A stretch of DNA of 64,000 bases from Entomortierella parvispora E1425 (GCA_020891255.1 BQFW01000012.1:1178001-1242000), one strand, 5' to 3'; numbered from the stretch's first letter, positions 24,035-33,263 are shown. Program-made: numbers and translations. Notes: generated by a model not told the origin, from the sequence alone.

Positions 24035-25840
24035 CTATTCCTTGAGCTCTAGATGGCCCTTGACTGCGCTTCCGACATTGACAATTTCCAACAAGAAGGC
24101 GTCGTGACCATACATGGAGTCGAGTTCATAATAAGTTACGTTCTTATTGCCCGTCTGCCTCAGGCAATCGGCTACTTCCTTTTGTTGCCAAACCGGGAAC
24201 AAGATGTCGGACTGGATTCCAAGGACTAACGTGGGAATGTCCTTGATCGTGCTCAAACCCGCTTTGAGATCGTTCAATTGAGCCTTGGGATCATCCAAGT
24301 CATCCTTAGCCTTGGCCTTGGCTGCTGCCTCGGCGACCGCAGATCCCGATCCCGTAGAACACACTGCTTGCTCCTGTTGCTGCTGGATCAATTGCTCCTC
24401 GGGCGACGTGGCTGCATTCTCGGGTGCCGTAGACCCCTTGCCTTCCTGGAGTCGAACCGTGTTTCTAGCCCTCCGAAGAGCAGTCTCGGCCGAGTTGGAG
24501 GCCGAAAGATCAAACATGTCCATTGCCTTGGAGACATAGAGCAACGAGTTGGGGTCATACTGAAGACAGAAACGTTCTCCCTGGTGATCCAGATAGGTCT
24601 CGATCAAAAAGTCTGCGCAGAGTGAAGGGGTCGTTGTTGGTTGAGATCTCTTTCTTCCAAATCGCTGCTCCCACTCGGGTCCCGATCGATAGGAGATGGT
24701 GGCAATCTCTCGAGCGAGTTTCATACCACTGTGGGGTGGCACCTTGTCGTAATAGAATCCCTTGTTCCAGTTGGGATCAGCCATCAGTACTAAGTATCAT
24801 GAAGATAGGATTCAGTTAATATTTCGCTGTCATTTACCATCCGATATCTCCCGTTTTGAAATAAAGAAAAGAAAAGAAAAACAAAAAAAGACGTAATGGG
24901 CAACATCTCGTTTTACCTTGACGCTGTGTGAATCGAAGGGCGATACTGTAAGGATGAGATCGCGCCGCGGCCGAGATACTGACAACCTTTCCAACGCGTT
25001 CCTTGAACAAAAGTGCTGCCGCAAGGGATTGCATGCCACCCATACTGGCACCAACCGAGGCATGCAACTTTTTGATGCCCATTGAGTTCAACATCTCAAA
25101 TTGAGCCCTAACCATATCAAAAATGGTAACGATCGGGAATCGGGTCGCATATGGTTTGTTGTCCTTGGGATCGATCGACGAGGGTCCTGTAGATCCATAA
25201 CAACCTCCAATGACGTTGGTGCAAACAACATGAAATCGGTTCGTATCGATCGCCAGACCCGGTCCAATGAACTTTTCCCACCATCCTGGCGCAGGGTTGG
25301 CCGGATGGGACTTTGCATGTGAGGAAGCCGACAATCCAGTATGAAGCAAGATCACATTGGATTTGTCTTCGTTGAGCTCTCCCCAGGATTCATACGCAAT
25401 CTCAAACGAGGGCAAGATCCCGCCATGGTCCAGCAGGAAAGGTTTCTTGTGGTGATAAAGACTGTAGCCAGAGACCGGGTTGCTGTAGGATGGCTCGGGA
25501 CCTCCATCAAATGACTGTTGAAGGAACTTTTGGGTTCGCTGTTCCAAATGATCGACGCAAGGGAACGCCATGGGTGGGTTGCTGGAGGAGTGGGCAGTCG
25601 CTGCGGACGACGATAGCGATCTCGAGGAGGATTGATTGACTATAAAAAAGACAAGGGCAAAAAGTATGAGCCATTGCTACTCTTTGTTTTTTACAAGCAG
25701 GGAGAGTGGTGACCACAGGAGAACTTGCGTTTTCGGGAAGCAGGGATAAGAGTAGTAGGCACTAGCGCCCGTAGGTGGACTGGCCCTGACAGGGTCGCCC
25801 TCAGAGAGCGCGTAGTTGCTGAGACGAGTCGAGGGTGCAT
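24035..25840 (-). CDS. CYS2: MetX-family serine O-succinyl/acetyltransferase (S. pombe Cys2 / A. nidulans CysA type), mitochondrial presequence, 3 exons
   Basis: '[10 protein letters not shown]', '[12 protein letters not shown]', '[10 protein letters not shown]', '[12 protein letters not shown]', nucleophile '[10 protein letters not shown]', 'SDILFP', 'YGHDAFLL'. HTGLS rather than CHALTG suggests the Cys2 rather than Met2 subfamily. Confidence 0.88.
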
Positions 25841-26300: not shown

Positions 26301-29300
26301 CTATGTACGTCGAGACTCCAGTCCTGATGCTACCAACACAGCAGAAACAAGTGACATCTGCTTACTAACACAGCCTCGGCAGATCCATCGATCGCCGCAG
26401 GTACCCACTGGCATCTTGTACAGTCCCCCGAATCCCTCTCCGCCTCCTGGGCCTGTCACTTCTGGAACGTCTGGATTACCGGCCGTCGGGGAGAGTGGCT
26501 CTAACTGGAAGTTCAAGGCCGCCAAATGGTCTGAGAGGTCATCATATCCAGTGCCGCCCAGAGACAAGCCAGCATGATTCATTGTATCACTGGCAGCGAC
26601 CATCGACACTCGCTTCATTTGTCCTCTTGTATTTGACCCGCCTGAAGGAGGTGTGTTTCCTGGAGTCTGTGATTGTTGGCGCACCAATCGAACGAGCCAC
26701 GCTTCGAGTTGTCTTAGCTTGGGACCTCTCATAGCCAACAGTTCATTCATGGTTGGTGGATGTCCCACTTCCTTTTGAAGCGAAGACTGCAACATCTCAC
26801 AATACATTCTTAAGGAGGGATACCATCGCTGACAGTTGTCCAGAGAGGTTCCCGTCTTGATTAGAGGCTGCTCCGGTCCCGGATTGTCATATGGGCCACT
26901 TGCAACAGCAACGAGATGGAGCAACATCTTTCCTAGATCTCGAACAAAGGATGCGGAGTCCTCAAGGACATAGCCACGATGGTCTGTAAAATGGGCATCC
27001 TCTCCAAAGCCGGTCAAGCCCTCACAGAGGAGGACAAGTCGAAGACTCTTGTTATCCATGATTTTGGACGGTTGGAAAGGTCGGCTGGGGTCCAGATCGT
27101 GCGCCATTGGAGGGAGCAACATGAACAATCGAGGAACTTGATCAAACTGAGAGTCCAAAATACGGCTCACGCCCTCCATCAACATCTGTTGTTGCTGTGT
27201 AGTTGAAGGTGAACTGTAGAACGAATCCAGAGATCCAGTACTGCTGTTGTAGTTGCTACCCCCTCCGTTTCCATCCATGTATGTGCTACCAAGTCCACCA
27301 TTTCTGAGATTGCAGAGTCGAGCCATCTTCAGGTCTCGGTAAGTTTGGATATTGTTGTTCACAACCAACTCGTCAGTGCGAACAGGATTGTCCGTGATGG
27401 GTGTCGTAAAGATATCCATCTGCAGGAGCTGGAGGGCTGTGGCTCGTTGATTTGGATCATGGGTCAGCATGGCATCCAGCAGTGGTATGTACGCCGGCAA
27501 TACATTCAGATGGTTGTAATACCGAACAGGTTTGAGCGGCCGCCGAGCGTTAGGGACGAGAGCATCCTTCGCCTTTTCGTCCGTAGGGAACAAAGGTCGG
27601 TCGGTTAAGAGCTCATAAATGACCAGTCCCAACGACCAAACATCCTGGGATCCTTTTGCGTAAACACCCTTCATAGTTGAGTTGGCGATCAAGATCTCTG
27701 GAGCGGCATAGGAGAAAGTGCACCGTCCTACAACCTCTTCCTCAATCACTCGAGCTGCCTCGAAATCTATCAGCTTCCAGCCTGAACCCGAATTTTGGCG
27801 CATGGTCGAGGTCGAATAAGGATCACGTACAAAGTTGGAGGGCTTGATGTTCAAGTGACAGATCTTTCGACTGTGAATCCAGGCCACACTTTCAATCATC
27901 GATCGGATGATCGGCAGCGTCACTTCCAGGCTAATCGAAGATGCGGAGCGCTCATTGATATACCCCTGCAGTGTCTCTGGGTACCACTGTAAGATCGACA
28001 GATAGCGACATCCTCCATCTCGATCTGTGCCATGCGGGTGAAAGAAGGTCTCGTAAAGTCCGACCACAAACGGGCTAACACTCTTGGAGTGCTGCTGTAG
28101 TTGAGGATAATCCGTGTATTGGCTGTCGAGTTTCTCCTCTGGTCGGTGGCAGGTCAGATATCTCATCATGGCACAGTCCACCTCCCATTCACGACGCGCC
28201 TTGATGTACTTGAGAATCACCTTGTCATTTGCCTCCTTGTCCATAGAGCTTTGCCGCTGTGTCGACCCCCGTTGCTGTCTGTTGGTAAAGGACGGACTCT
28301 TGTCCTTGACGTACATTCCTTCTCGGACATACTTTTCACGAGACAGTCCGATTGTATACCGTGACATGATTCTGCGGCCAATAGTCTGGTCTGGCAAAGA
28401 CTCTTGGATATCTCTCCCTTCACAAGGCAACGCTCGAGGCGAATACTGGGTGAAAATAGGCTCTTTGGCGGCCGCGGGTATCCTAGCTGGAATAGGTGCG
28501 GCAGGAGACCTCACTAATGTACTGAAAGAGTCATTATAGGATAGAGCGGAAGTTGGCCTTGAGCTCTGGGCAACTCGACTAGGGGGCTTCTGACGGCCTG
28601 TAGCTCCTGAATAAGGCAACTGTTGCTCCTGGGACATGGGAGAAGCGTAAAATACCCCCTGTCCCAAGGGGCTGGATGGTGCAATCACATGTCCTTGATT
28701 TGGGTAGAAGTAGTTCCGTGTACCAGGTCGATCCATTTCTGGCAAGGCTCCCGGCATCTTGAAATTACTGGGACGCGAAGGCTCTTGGTCTGCTTGCATC
28801 TTGAAGTTACTGGGGCGCGAGGTTTCTTGGTCTGCTGGCATCTTGTAAGAATTGGTACGCGAGGACTCCTGAGTAAATGGGGGCTTGAAGGAATTGGTCC
28901 GCGAAGGTTCCTGATCTCCCAATTTAGGAGTCATAGCAGATGCAAGCATCGTGGCAATGACCGCTGCTGATGGCGGAGGTGGCGAGGTCAACAATGACAG
29001 TTGCTCTGAGAGAGTACGCTGATGCTCATGAGAATAGGTATCGGGAAGGTAACCAGAGGCAGGTCCAAGGGAAGAAGCTGTAACCGGAATCGAATTCTGG
29101 GGAGCAGTGGGATGACTCAGTGCGATGGCAGCTGCCATCATACTACCCTGGGTCTGTGGGATTGTCAGAGTTTGAGCTGACTGAGAAGAGGATGCTCCTG
29201 TATTCATTTGGTATCGTGTGTTAGGCAAAGTCGAATATTTGGTGTTGCCATTCAATTCTGGCATCCTGGACTTGGGAGCATTCCGAGGTTGAAAGACCGT

Positions 29301-31497
29301 GTGGGGTTGGTATGGCACGGATGGGCTCTGGATCGGAGGCATCGGGTTTTTAGGAGGAGGGGATGGCATTTGTGTGGGTAAAGGCATGGGTGCTGATGTC
29401 ACTGGGGATGCTGCCCCGGGTCCCAGACCCTGCGACTGCTGTGGATAGTTTTGAGACTGTGTCTGCTGCGTCTGTTGTGGTTGCTGTTGAATCTGCTGTG
29501 GCTGCCGTGGCGGAATGTAATTCTCTGCGACGGGCATAGGGATACTCAATGGCCTCTCAGGTCGAGGAGGGGGTTGTGGCTGTCCACTGCCTGCTCCCTG
29601 GCCAGAGGCCTGGAAGGATGCAGGGAGATGTCCACCGCCGGTGTAAAGCGAGTCGCCAGGATATCCGCCTGCAGGTCGAGGAAAGAGATCGCGCCCATTG
29701 CTTCGCTGTTGGATTTTCAAGTCATCGTAGTAGAACTGGGCAGCAAGAGCACGCTTCAGTATCTGCGGCGTGGGCTCAAGCCAATTGGGGTCAAACGGGG
29801 CCACCAAATATCTGAGAGGGTTGATGTTTCCATCGCTGTCCTGGAGAATGAACGTCTGTTTTGGGCTACCAACATCCCCATCCACTCCTTCCACCTCGTG
29901 CTTCCTGTTTAAACTATCGTGGACGTCATTTTCTTCATCGTCCTCGTCGTCCTCGTAATCATCGTAATCAGCATCTTCGTCCTCATCGTCCTCATCGTCC
30001 TCATCGTCGTCATCATAATCATCGTTGTCATCCGAGTAATCATCCTCTTCTTCTGAAGAGGAGTTTGCAGGAATAAAAACTCGTACGTCTTCCATGGACC
30101 TTGACATAGTACGTCGATCAGGTGAATCTGCGAACCGGATTGTCCGCTTCCTCTCTTTCAGATCAGCCATGGACCGAGGGCGATGTAGCCGATTCAAAGG
30201 GGATCGTGTAAAGTCAGAAGTGTTAACAGGCGGGTCGCCGATAGTGGGGTGACTGATATTCAACGCCCTGATCGTAGTGGGTTGTGATGCGCTCCTGGAC
30301 TTGGCAAAACTAGACCGAAGTTGTTGAAGTCTATTCAGCTTCTTGCCAGTCTTCGCTGGCGACTGCTTCTTATCGGATCTTCTCAAGATTGAACGGGTTT
30401 TGGAAGCAGTGGCCTCTCTGTGAGGCGACATTTCCGAAGTATCCGGCGCCGGCTATCAGGGATAAAGAATGTCCAGAAGTAGAGACGGGAAAAATGGAAA
30501 AGAAAAAAACAGCAATCGTGTGTTCAGCATGGTGCAACATAGAGTCCGACGTAGCAAAACAACCACAGTTGAGGACAGCAATTGAAAGCGTGCCCCCAGC
30601 CCCAATCCTTCATTGTTGTCGACTTACGATGGGGTCACACAGCCACAAACGGAGATGGACTTGACCCGACTTCACGCCGTCGTTTGAAAGTTGAAGCCAG
30701 CCTAAGAAGCAGGGGTGAACAAGAAAAATAAATACAAGAGAACATGTAAAGTGCCAATGGCACGGGGTCGGGGGAACAATGAGTGGAAGAGGTCAGGAAC
30801 GGACGACGAACCACACGCCCCATTTTCGAACCTCTATTTCCCTTTCTCTCTCTCTCTGACAGCCACTGCTCTTGCTGCTCTCTGAACACTACTCCTGGCT
30901 CTCGCCAACCGTATTGGAGGAAAACGGGCCTTACCGTCATAGAGGCCCGCGTCGGACGAAAACAGCACTTGCTTCAGGTCCACATCACAGGTACCAATCA
31001 GCCCGCCCTTGGCCCCTGTCTGTTCATGATAACAGGATATCTTCAGTGTTGTTTCTTCCTGAGTGCCATCGTGAATTTCATGAAAGGTTTTCTAAGCGCA
31101 CAATCAAAGTTGGGTTCCAGGTCAAGGACCAACGCGTACAGTTAGTTCAGCATTCACCAAGCCCAGCAAACTGAAACCGAGTCCGAGTTAGTGTTAGTGG
31201 CAAAAGAGAAAGAGAATACAGGCGGGCACTCACAGTGTGGTTCCAAGAAGGGTTCACACCGCCCTTGACGGCGACTGCTGTGTACTTTGTCAGCTTTTGA
31301 ATGAAGAATGACAGGTAGGGATCTAACAGTGAAGTAAAAGAACCATTGAGTTTGTTCATTCTGTCTTGCATGTTGGTAATGGACAGGGATTTTTTTTTTG
31401 TGCTTTTCTGACCTTGGGTTCCAAACCGCTTCTTGTTGGCTAGATCCTTGCCTGCCACAGCAGTGATTTTGAGTCCTCTCGGGAACGATTGCACCAT
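26301..31497 (-). CDS. ~1518-aa C2 - Pro/Gln-rich - pseudokinase - COR-like protein, 5 exons
   Basis: Exons 31497-31413, 31322-31234, 31091-30935, 30701-30628 and 30452-26301 splice in phase via GT-AG introns. C2 'KDLANKKRFGTQDPY...GGVNPSWNH...LIGTCDVDL'; kinase fold 'VILKY', 'HLNIKPSNF', 'WKLIDFE', 'YAAPE', 'DVWSLG'; tail 'PRLFMLLP...LRLVLLCE...HRGY...GGLYK...WIC'. Confidence 0.85.
28750..28920 (-). repeat. About four tandem 42-nt (14-aa) coding repeats, xQE(P/S/T)SR(T/P)(N/S)(S/N)(F/Y)K
   Basis: 'DQEPSRTNSFKPPFTQESSRTNSYKMPADQETSRPSNFKMQADQEPSRPSNFKMP'. Confidence 0.85.
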
Positions 31498-33263
31498 GGC
31501 CAAGTCTGCAAGTTAGGGAAAAAGAACAAGGAGGTGGGCGAGAATGAAAAGGGGAGGGGGGGGGGAAGGTGCAAGGTCGGCGCAGGCACAGGGCGTGTTG
31601 CTCGGACAGCAAAAAGAGAGAAAAAAGGAAGCAAAAGGATGAGGCTGCAAAGGACAAGAGAGGAGAAGAGCAAGCAAGAAAGTGAGAGCGAGTGAGAGCG
31701 AGAGAGGAAGGCTATCGGCACGGCGGTGTTAATGGAAGTATGAAAAAAGGGTATATCGCCGAGATACTGCGATGATGGGGTCGTAAAGTTGAAAAGGAAA
31801 GGAAGAAAGAAAGAGAGCGATGGAAGCTAGCTTGCAGTAGAGATGAGGATTGTTTTGGGACAATTGCCAGGAGCGATGGACAAATCAAACAGCGGACAAC
31901 GATGCAGAAGAGGAAGAGGTTGTCCACCCAAACGACCAGTGTAACCACACTGTTTTGTTTTCAAAGGAAGCACAAGTCAGCACGAGCAGGTCTCCCGCGC
32001 TTCCTCACCGCCCCCTATCGCCCCTGTGAGCGGAAGGTTTGGGCTGGATCTCACAGAGCGTTCCCAACCGATCTAGCAATGCCCTTGAGAAAGAATGGAC
32101 AGTACAGTTCTTGGCCAGCTTCCTTCCAAGGGCAGAAACGACTGGACCGTTGGTCCGTTTTTTAAGGTGGAGAGTCAACAGAGCAAGGATGCTTGCCCAT
32201 TGTGGCCAAGCACGCTTGTAAAAGAGACACGAGTTATGGCCATGACAATAAGGGACGTGCCTTGGATAATGGGTGCTAATTCTTCCGGCGCAAGTAGTAG
32301 GCCATGGTTAATGACCTGTAGAGCGCGTCTGGTCGAATCTTCTCCTCCTCCCATGCCCTCTCTCTTTATTTTTCTCTCTGCCAATGTTCTTGCTGTTGGC
32401 CTACGGATACGTTGACCCCCCTCATCTTGCTACGGTTGAGTCGACTCCTAGTGGAATGATGATGTCGATGAACAAAAATGAACAACAAACATTTTGCGCC
32501 ACCACAACCTGGGTTGCAGTAGTAGTTGCTCAGTCCTCCTTCTCTCACAGAAGGCCCAATGCTCTTGTTGACAAGATCTAGCCCATGATCCGTGTGTTTT
32601 CCAAGGGCCCATGACGACCTGTTGTTTTGGTGACGATAGCTCTTTTCACTCGTCACCCTTCATTTGTCGATTGTGTGTGCTACCTTGGTCCCTTTTTTGG
32701 ACCATTGGCTTTGACACCCGACGAGGGCCTGGTCCTTCTCTTTGCCAGACCCGACTTTTCGTTATATAGATAGATATAGTGTGGAGATCGAATCTTGGGC
32801 GAAGCCCTCAATAAGAAAGAGAAAAAAGAAAACAATGGTGGGGGGAATTGATCTGTGCACGTATACCCCAAGCATACGTGGAAAAGTGTGTGCTCAGCTT
32901 CCCTAGAGCATCTCCAGAAAGTGGACAATCACTTAAACCCCGCGGTCTCTCGGAATGCCGAAGGACAAAAAAAAAGTGGTGAGCGATCCCATGGACGAGG
33001 GCTCAAAAAAAAAAAATAAGCATTTTGCTTTGTTGATTGGCACATGAAGGCCATTTCCATTGTGGCCTAGTCATCACAAATGCACCTGTGAATATCTCTT
33101 GTGGGAACGCAAGCAATAAAGGGGGAATGGAGAAGACCCCGGGAGGGGTCCATGTGCTGATCTTTATGATAAGATGTGTGGTGTGTGTGTGTGTGTTTGA
33201 ATGATGTCTAGCCTCGGAAACAAAAAAGGAGAGCAAGATAAAGAAATATCATGCAGATCTCCT

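Follow-up and report, generated by a model that had tools for sequence, protein, structure and literature searches.

Within a window of 64,000 nucleotides from Entomortierella parvispora E1425 (GCA_020891255.1, BQFW01000012.1:1178001-1242000; all positions are counted from the first letter of this whole stretch), the minus strand of positions 26301-31497 carries a five-exon gene. Its 1518-amino-acid protein joins an N-terminal C2 domain, a long disordered linker, a protein kinase domain with degraded catalytic motifs, and, at the C-terminus, a domain that has a conserved Cys/His cluster and is here called the tail. We judge it moderately probable that this locus encodes a non-catalytic, membrane-docked signalling scaffold with these four parts. 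According to this reading, the kinase region would not phosphorylate substrates and would act instead as a scaffold or an allosteric switch, which may bind nucleotide or be purely structural; the C2 domain would dock the protein, independently of calcium, to a membrane or a partner; and the tail would bind zinc and mediate either self-association (dimerisation) or contacts with partners, such as other proteins that carry a tail. Our literature search found no publication on the C2-pseudokinase-tail architecture or on the tail domain, in agreement with an earlier note on this DNA, whose author knew of no described protein with the combination.

The kinase domain and its Glomeromycotina relatives

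The kinase region is recognised by the Pfam profile Pkinase (PF00069) at residues 922-1149 (87.7 bits, E 1e-24), with a match that starts only at profile position 53, and the solved kinases that come closest to it, in sequence as well as in fold, are GSK3, CDK and CaMK (Foldseek E 1e-11). In the HMMER alignment, CHLNIKPSN stands over CHRDIKPQN of GSK3, and DFE over DFG. The codon at 27849-27851 is AAC and the HLN triplet aligns to the HRD of GSK3, so that the replacement of the catalytic Asp by Asn, as first read in the earlier note, is upheld, and the DFE, the Asp in helix alphaC and the missing Gly-rich loop that it had also listed were all seen again in the sequence or in the alignments. 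Among the features normally required for catalysis, the protein has thus lost the catalytic-loop Asp, the Gly-rich loop (the 90 residues before and around strand beta3 contain no G.G..[GAS] pattern) and the alphaC Glu, and it has retained the beta3 Lys (VILK), the catalytic-loop Asn and the Asp of the DFG position. These retained residues are conserved, as is the APE motif. The 53 residues preceding beta3 have a predicted local distance difference test score (pLDDT) of about 30 in the AlphaFold model.

These substitutions are fixed in the family. HLN is found in all 31 Mortierellaceae orthologues with the region and HRD in none of them, every one of them reads DF[E/D], and helix alphaC reads WE[IV]D in every aligned orthologue. 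Across 14 orthologues, the kinase blocks are 70-83% identical to the residue of this protein, whereas the linker is not conserved. The conservation of these blocks together with the degradation of the catalytic motifs argues for selection on a non-catalytic function.

Outside Mortierellaceae, the sole relatives that combine the kinase with the tail belong to Glomeromycotina; they have a Kelch propeller at the N-terminus and come from Paraglomus (P. brasilianum, P0033), Ambispora, Geosiphon, Acaulospora, Dentiscutata and Racocetra (P0033 and P0172-P0182). They share with our protein the kinase subfamily (His-Leu, DFE), the tail domain and the order of both, with 26-28% identity over kinase and tail, and they differ from it in having the Kelch propeller instead of the C2 domain and linker and, in several cases, a hydrophobic stretch of at least 19 residues that resembles a membrane span. 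They also differ in their catalytic residues: the loop reads HLD, with the catalytic Asp kept, in 12 of 13, the alphaC motif is F-x-x-E, with Glu, in 13 of 13, and, judging by these motifs, these kinases look active. DFE is present in the 12 of 12 that were scorable for the DFx motif; in the thirteenth relative, P0177, the catalytic loop was missed by the search pattern. As a side observation, the Kelch propeller, the non-RD (HLD) DFE kinase and the tail give these proteins the composition of receptor-like kinases, and they appear uncharacterised.

Because relatives that keep the catalytic Asp also have both His-Leu and DFE, neither of these is a mark of inactivation. Both are ancestral to the subfamily, and only the change from Asp to Asn, the change from the alphaC Glu to Asp, and the loss of the Gly-rich loop are derived in the C2 lineage. 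The C2-pseudokinase is shown, on grounds of sequence comparison, to descend from a kinase plus tail module. The suggestion of the earlier note that the protein may be catalytically dead is supported by these three changes, and not by the Leu and the DFE, which it had also listed.

A kinase that is still active through an unusual mechanism, or that carries out some other nucleotide-dependent chemistry as some pseudokinases do, would account for the conservation of the beta3 Lys, the catalytic-loop Asn, the Asp of DFE and the APE motif, and it would fit with the active look of the DFE relatives that retain the catalytic Asp. We consider it quite unlikely, however, since the base Asp, the alphaC Glu and the Gly-rich loop are three independent features that were lost together, with the loss fixed in 31 of 31 orthologues, and since the strands before beta3 are modelled without confidence.

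The joined gene and its C2 domain

The earlier note had added four small exons, in phase, to a 1376-amino-acid open reading frame (ORF), a long minus-strand frame that spans 26301-30431 and has its own ATG at 30431. The script-joined product of the five minus-strand exons is an open frame of 4557 nucleotides, all four introns are GT-AG, and the reading phase is maintained into the long ORF. When the kinase and tail region was searched against a database, the E. parvispora protein EMPS_08764 (P0001; 1518 amino acids, "hypothetical protein"), which has precomputed Pfam matches to C2 and Pkinase, came up at 100% identity, and this entry is letter for letter the same as the spliced product. The four-exon addition is therefore correct, and it is already in the public annotation. 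The genome itself was presented in an announcement (PMC8759367). The protein is single-copy, with one orthologue per species across Mortierellaceae, and the databases name these orthologues "hypothetical" or give them spurious automatic names, for example "regulator of ime2" or "Glycogen synthase kinase-3 beta".

A search for sequencing runs of every kind, after one for RNA runs of this strain that listed none, returned mainly DNA runs. Transcript evidence was sought in four runs of unrecorded kind with the same species label, which were compared over positions 30250-31750. In run X10, a contig of 3621 nucleotides (depth 237) covers 30363-30452, 30635-30699, 30934-31091 and 31234-31316, and lacks introns 4, 3 and 2. 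The joint of intron 2 is exact (31091 to 31234), the skipped ends being CT..AC on the plus strand and thus GT..AG on the coding strand, and the remaining joints deviate from the gene model only by a few diverged letters beside the joint. Intron 1 is bridged by shorter X10 contigs. A contig of the same run that contains intron 3 has a depth of 4.4, and run X4, which is larger and comes from the same sample, contains the intron-bearing form only. Despite the same species label, the identity of the X10 contigs to the window is only 80-95%, and they must therefore come from a relative. They amount to transcript-like support for a joined C2-kinase message, with introns 2 to 4 removed in one contig and intron 1 in short ones, in a relative and not as proof for this strain.

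That the C2 exons are a separate gene or a prediction artefact, and that the true protein begins at the ATG at 30431, is an explanation to which we give hardly any credence. It could draw on the fact that no RNA run is listed for the exact strain and on several database orthologues annotated without the C2 domain. It is opposed by the X10 contig that joins exons 2 to 5 without introns and the short contigs that bridge intron 1, by a phase preserved over four GT-AG introns, by about 18 independently annotated species with C2 and kinase in one protein, and by the high conservation of the N-terminus. A long pyrimidine-rich (CT) tract with strong GC and AT skew lies directly 5' of the start codon (31510-31740, minus strand) and is probably promoter or 5' untranslated sequence.

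The assignment of the added exons to a C2 domain also holds. The Pfam profile C2 (PF00168) matches residues 9-114 (E 3.9e-14, 53.2 bits versus a cut-off of 22), and exons 2 and 3, translated separately, each match this profile on their own (Table 1). In a search of the Protein Data Bank (PDB) sequences, the domain resembles generic C2 domains, such as those of myoferlin, Doc2b, plant small C2 proteins and synaptotagmins. Of the five Ca2+ ligands of Doc2b, a single one is kept (the Asp of QDPY), the other positions being occupied by Lys, His, Gln and Gly: the loop-1 Asp is replaced by Lys, and the D-x-D…D of loop 3 by H-x-Q…G. The basic loop of the domain is retained. Given the loss of four of the five ligand positions, the domain lacks the full set of acidic ligands of a Ca2+-dependent C2 domain (synaptotagmin/Doc2 type) and is predicted to behave independently of Ca2+.

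The tail domain and its likeness to COR in predicted folds

The tail is an alpha/beta domain of roughly 260 amino acids with a disordered insert of about 75 amino acids ahead of a beta-hairpin. The hairpin block is its most conserved part (93% over the 14 orthologues, with kinase and tail blocks together ranging over 70-93%). An HMMER search with the last 297 residues against 1.8 billion representatives gave just seven matches, namely orthologues and three weak ones. The latter share the motif set PRLF…LP, LCE, H-x3-H-x-G-Y, LRG-x-x-L and G-x-L-Y…W-x-C, and comprise one Paraglomus protein with kinase and tail and two kinase-less Mortierellaceae proteins with the domain twice, in one of which the duplicated domain is followed by RNI-type LRRs. 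Upon searching with the tail copy of this LRR protein, at least 666 proteins were found at E < 1e-3 among only 2418 candidates, and all of the 120 tail carriers listed were Mortierellaceae or unlabelled. Related proteins P0051-P0171, from Mortierellaceae, belong to this family. The tail is often duplicated inside one protein, its partner domains include LRR_6/LRR_TMOD-LMOD, NACHT, NB-ARC, Sel1, TPR, kinase and WW, and the paralogues in E. parvispora include EMPS_02592, EMPS_04233, EMPS_00756, EMPS_00763 and EMPS_09003. This pattern of partners resembles expanded receptor or NLR-like repertoires.

In an alignment of 49 diverse tail domains with 17-26% identity to the reference, F1245, P1249, H1293, G1295, Y1296, W1491 and C1493 are invariant, and P1242, R1243, C1278, E1279 and H1289 are each found in 48 of the domains. 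At position 1496, 13 domains have Cys and 36 have His, with no other residue seen, as is typical of a metal ligand. The resulting signature reads C…H-x3-H…W-x-C-x2-[C/H]. An interchange of Cys and His in a pattern such as C…H-x3-H…C-x2-[C/H] commonly marks zinc sites, from which we infer that the Cys/His cluster of the tail is a candidate zinc site.

Pfam gave nothing above cut-off on the 49 tail copies, and the profile of these copies returned only noise from the PDB sequences (apolipoprotein and TGA3, E 0.5 or worse). A language-model feature search with the tail gave scores of 0.81 or below, which is chance level, so that the IRE1/RNase L and PAN3 rows in its output are no evidence. FV_peptidase was considered and rejected as a candidate family, as it matched three tail members with a best E of 4.7e-4, at 20 bits versus a cut-off of 27, on a variable helical segment and not on the Cys/His residues.

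The tail could nevertheless be an effector enzyme controlled by the pseudokinase, by analogy with the logic of RNase L and IRE1, with an active site made of the Cys, Glu, His, His and Tyr residues, for example that of a metal-dependent hydrolase. Such an enzyme would explain why all, or nearly all, of these divergent domains share the Arg, Cys, Glu, two His, Tyr and Trp residues. Further arguments for it are rotifer tail-like domains fused to an ADP-ribosyltransferase domain and at least one family member, P0088, where the tail (residues 295-551 of a NACHT/NB-ARC protein) occupies a possible effector position by analogy with fungal NLRs, the NACHT domain itself not having been located. We regard this alternative as unlikely, because neither the fold nor the sequence of the tail matched an enzyme family, the FV_peptidase matches being below cut-off and away from the Cys/His residues, and because the alternation of Cys and His at position 1496 is more in keeping with a structural metal site than with a catalytic residue.

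The earlier note had compared the tail with the COR-B-like region of Roco and TORNADO1 proteins. The AlphaFold2 model of the tail, computed on the alignment of 49 sequences, reaches a pLDDT of about 90 in its core and a predicted template modelling score of 0.73, and consists of an N-terminal helix, three strands, four helices, the disordered insert, the beta-hairpin and a last helix. In the ESM Atlas, each of the four family sets that lie nearest to this model carries Roc/COR-A/COR-B: three of them align over 180-186 residues with template modelling (TM) scores by query of 0.45-0.49 (4.0-4.6 Å), and the fourth over 139 residues with a TM score of 0.34 (4.9 Å), the next, unrelated row being at 0.27. 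Two of these Roco clusters are just 496 and 730 amino acids long, which leaves no space for a domain beyond Roc-COR. Among AlphaFold DB clusters, the tail matched two "COR domain-containing" proteins of the alga Gonium (at 860-1092 of 1095 and 304-541 of 546), a pats1-like kinase directly ahead of its kinase, and the own members of the family. In Swiss-Prot, the only match with a probability above 0.1 was TORNADO1 (residues 1162-1373 of 1380, E 0.09, probability 0.57), a protein with LRRs followed by a C-terminal ROC-COR (PMC4104024), so that the matched stretch is the end of COR. In addition, an independent ESMFold model of the paralogue P0133 again ranks the COR-A/COR-B cluster second.

Other AlphaFold DB matches of the tail (A0A2J7ZPW2, A0A6H5KND7 and A0A817YJR7) are green- and brown-algal proteins in which a tail-like domain comes after a kinase, and rotifer proteins that join a tail-like domain to an ADP-ribosyltransferase. 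Judging by these models, the domain may be far older and wider than Mucoromycota.

Several results weigh against parts of the scaffold reading and against the COR relationship. Neither COR-A (PF16095) nor COR-B (PF25497) matches any of the 49 tails at E up to 1, and the tail model found no match in the PDB (Foldseek) or in two further structure searches, including the solved chains of LRRK2 and CtRoco. The COR likeness is thus a comparison of one predicted structure with another, at TM scores below 0.5. The conserved polar residues of the tail (Arg, Cys, Glu, His, His, Tyr) could serve an active site as well. The transcript evidence derives from a relative and from a run of unrecorded kind. 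Finally, an Asn at the catalytic position is not always inactivating, and HER3 keeps a weak activity.

Further null results bear on the same comparison: the precomputed Pfam matches of about 170 tail-bearing proteins include neither COR-A nor COR-B, the whole protein has no Roc or Ras match in Pfam at E up to 0.1, and the Swiss-Prot structure matches of the tail include none of LRRK1/2, DAPK1, MFHAS1 and the Dictyostelium Rocos. We conclude that the likeness to COR-B is real for predicted folds and unproven as homology. What survives of the earlier comparison is therefore the set of predicted-structure matches to Roco and TORNADO1 proteins, and it finds no counterpart in Pfam COR profiles, in a Roc domain or in solved Roco chains. 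A bolder version, in which the tail would be a zinc-binding orphan relative of COR-B with homotypic interactions, and the C2-pseudokinase a shared membrane-docked adaptor (an IRAK- or ZED1-like hub) of the hundreds of receptor-like LRR, NACHT, NB-ARC and Sel1 proteins over which Mortierellaceae would have spread the tail, is in our opinion a long shot.

Other features, significance and known systems

The linker (about residues 135-830, some 700 residues) is disordered and poorly conserved over the 14 orthologues, with conserved islands at residues 225-236, 333-380, 517-524 and 599-615. The strongly conserved island at 333-380 (Table 1) gave no match in Pfam and may be a docking motif or a mini-domain. 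The linker also contains an acidic tract and an array of 14-amino-acid repeats, whose 42-nucleotide tandem units with four copies were also placed at 28753-28868 on the minus strand. The array is lineage-specific, being found in E. parvispora, with one occurrence in Gryganskiella, and the other orthologues lack it. Its SR[TP]NSFK units looked similar to basophilic kinase sites, an interpretation that was rejected for this same lineage specificity. Outside the gene, inspection by eye suggests that a neighbouring ORF of 245 amino acids (24834-25571, minus strand) may encode an alpha/beta-hydrolase resembling homoserine O-acetyltransferases, probably as a single exon within a larger gene.

Table 1. 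Positions in the window of the exons, domains and motifs of the C2-pseudokinase-tail gene
Feature	Position	Strand	Basis
Exon 1, C2 start	31413..31497	-	ATG at 31497; orthologue N-termini (MVQSFPRGL...) conserved
Exon 2, C2 strands (DPYLSF...GGVNPSWN)	31234..31322	-	Pfam C2 profile 24-53; X10 contigs link it to exons 1 and 3
Exon 3, C2 core, loop-3 Ca ligands replaced (YHEQTGAKGG)	30935..31091	-	Pfam C2 profile 57-92; Doc2b alignment
Exon 4, final C2 strand (GQVHLRLWL)	30628..30701	-	Splice model, Pfam, X10 contig
Exon 5 with stop codon: disordered linker, pseudokinase and tail domain	26301..30452	-	ORF, splice model, database identity
Asp/Glu-rich acidic tract, about residues 268-310	29935..30032	-	Tandem-repeat finder and sequence
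Conserved 48-residue island, residues 333-380 (…PLRYLVAPFDPNWLEP…; …PLRYLVAPFDPNWLEPTPQILKRALAAQFYYDD…)	29718..29861	-	77% mean identity, 14 orthologues
Four tandem 14-amino-acid repeats (…QE[PST]SR[TP][NS][SN][FY]K…)	28722..28925	-	Period-42 array
Pseudokinase domain, residues about 835-1150	27408..28355	-	Pfam Pkinase; PDB sequence and fold matches
VILK (beta3 Lys)	28206-28220	-	Sequence motif
alphaC Asp	within 28155-28190	-	Alignment with orthologues and Glomeromycotina relatives
HLNIKPSN catalytic loop	27834-27857	-	Sequence motif
Asn codon AAC replacing the catalytic Asp	27849..27851	-	Sequence
DFE	27759-27767	-	Sequence motif
APE	27696-27704	-	Sequence motif
Tail domain, residues 1218-1505	26343..27206	-	Profile match, AlphaFold2 model, invariant columns, fold searches
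Tail motif PRLFMLLP	27111-27134	-	Sequence
Tail motif LLCEG	27018-27032	-	Sequence
Tail motif HFTDHRGY	26970-26993	-	Sequence
Tail hairpin GGLYK…RWICRGC	26370-26429	-	Sequence

Pseudokinase scaffolds are already known, and what is new here is the combination of domains and the undescribed end domain. The union of a C2 domain, a dead kinase and a Cys/His tail is conserved across Mortierellaceae, and a clear evolutionary path leads to this cytosolic dead version from a Kelch receptor-like kinase module of the sister subphylum that looks active. The tail itself represents a large family without a Pfam match, whose nearest predicted folds are those of the dimerising half of COR. ROC and COR have been stated not to occur in isolation (PMC4104024), and this published statement that COR never lacks Roc would be contradicted if the COR relationship were true. 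In the same case, the protein would provide a simple fungal system for the communication between a COR-B-type domain and a kinase fold, which is central to LRRK2 biology. If, furthermore, the hub-adaptor reading were true, signalling of an innate-immunity type, so far unseen in early-diverging fungi, would run through a COR-like domain without a Roc GTPase.

Among known systems, the cytokinesis proteins Inn1 and Fic1, which have a C2 domain and a PxxP tail, had been put forward in the earlier note as bearers of the same type of C2 domain. They do have, like our protein, an N-terminal C2 domain without Ca ligands that is followed by a Pro-rich disordered region. The PDB sequence search, which returned only generic C2 domains, brought out no specific likeness, and kinase and tail domains are, to our knowledge, absent from Inn1 and Fic1.

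Roco proteins share with the tail a sheet, four helices and a hairpin, and provide its nearest predicted folds; COR, like the tail, adjoins a kinase domain and belongs to a family in which RNI-type LRRs are abundant (PMC4104024). The protein described here differs from them in having no Roc GTPase and no Pfam match to COR-A or COR-B, and in the position of the tail domain, which comes after the kinase and not before it. The tail has, moreover, an invariant Cys/His cluster, and we know of no such cluster in COR.

The adaptors IRAK2 and IRAK3 are comparable by analogy only, as there is neither a death domain nor homology; in both cases, the partner of a dead kinase is a domain found on many receptor-like proteins, here those with LRR, NACHT and NB-ARC domains. 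HER3 and JAK JH2 are pseudokinases of the HxN type. They belong to an unrelated kinase subfamily, the nearest kinases being here GSK3, CDK and CaMK, and have other partner domains. Our protein nonetheless resembles them in the feature that marks this type, an Asn in place of the catalytic Asp within a recognisable catalytic loop that keeps its downstream Asn.

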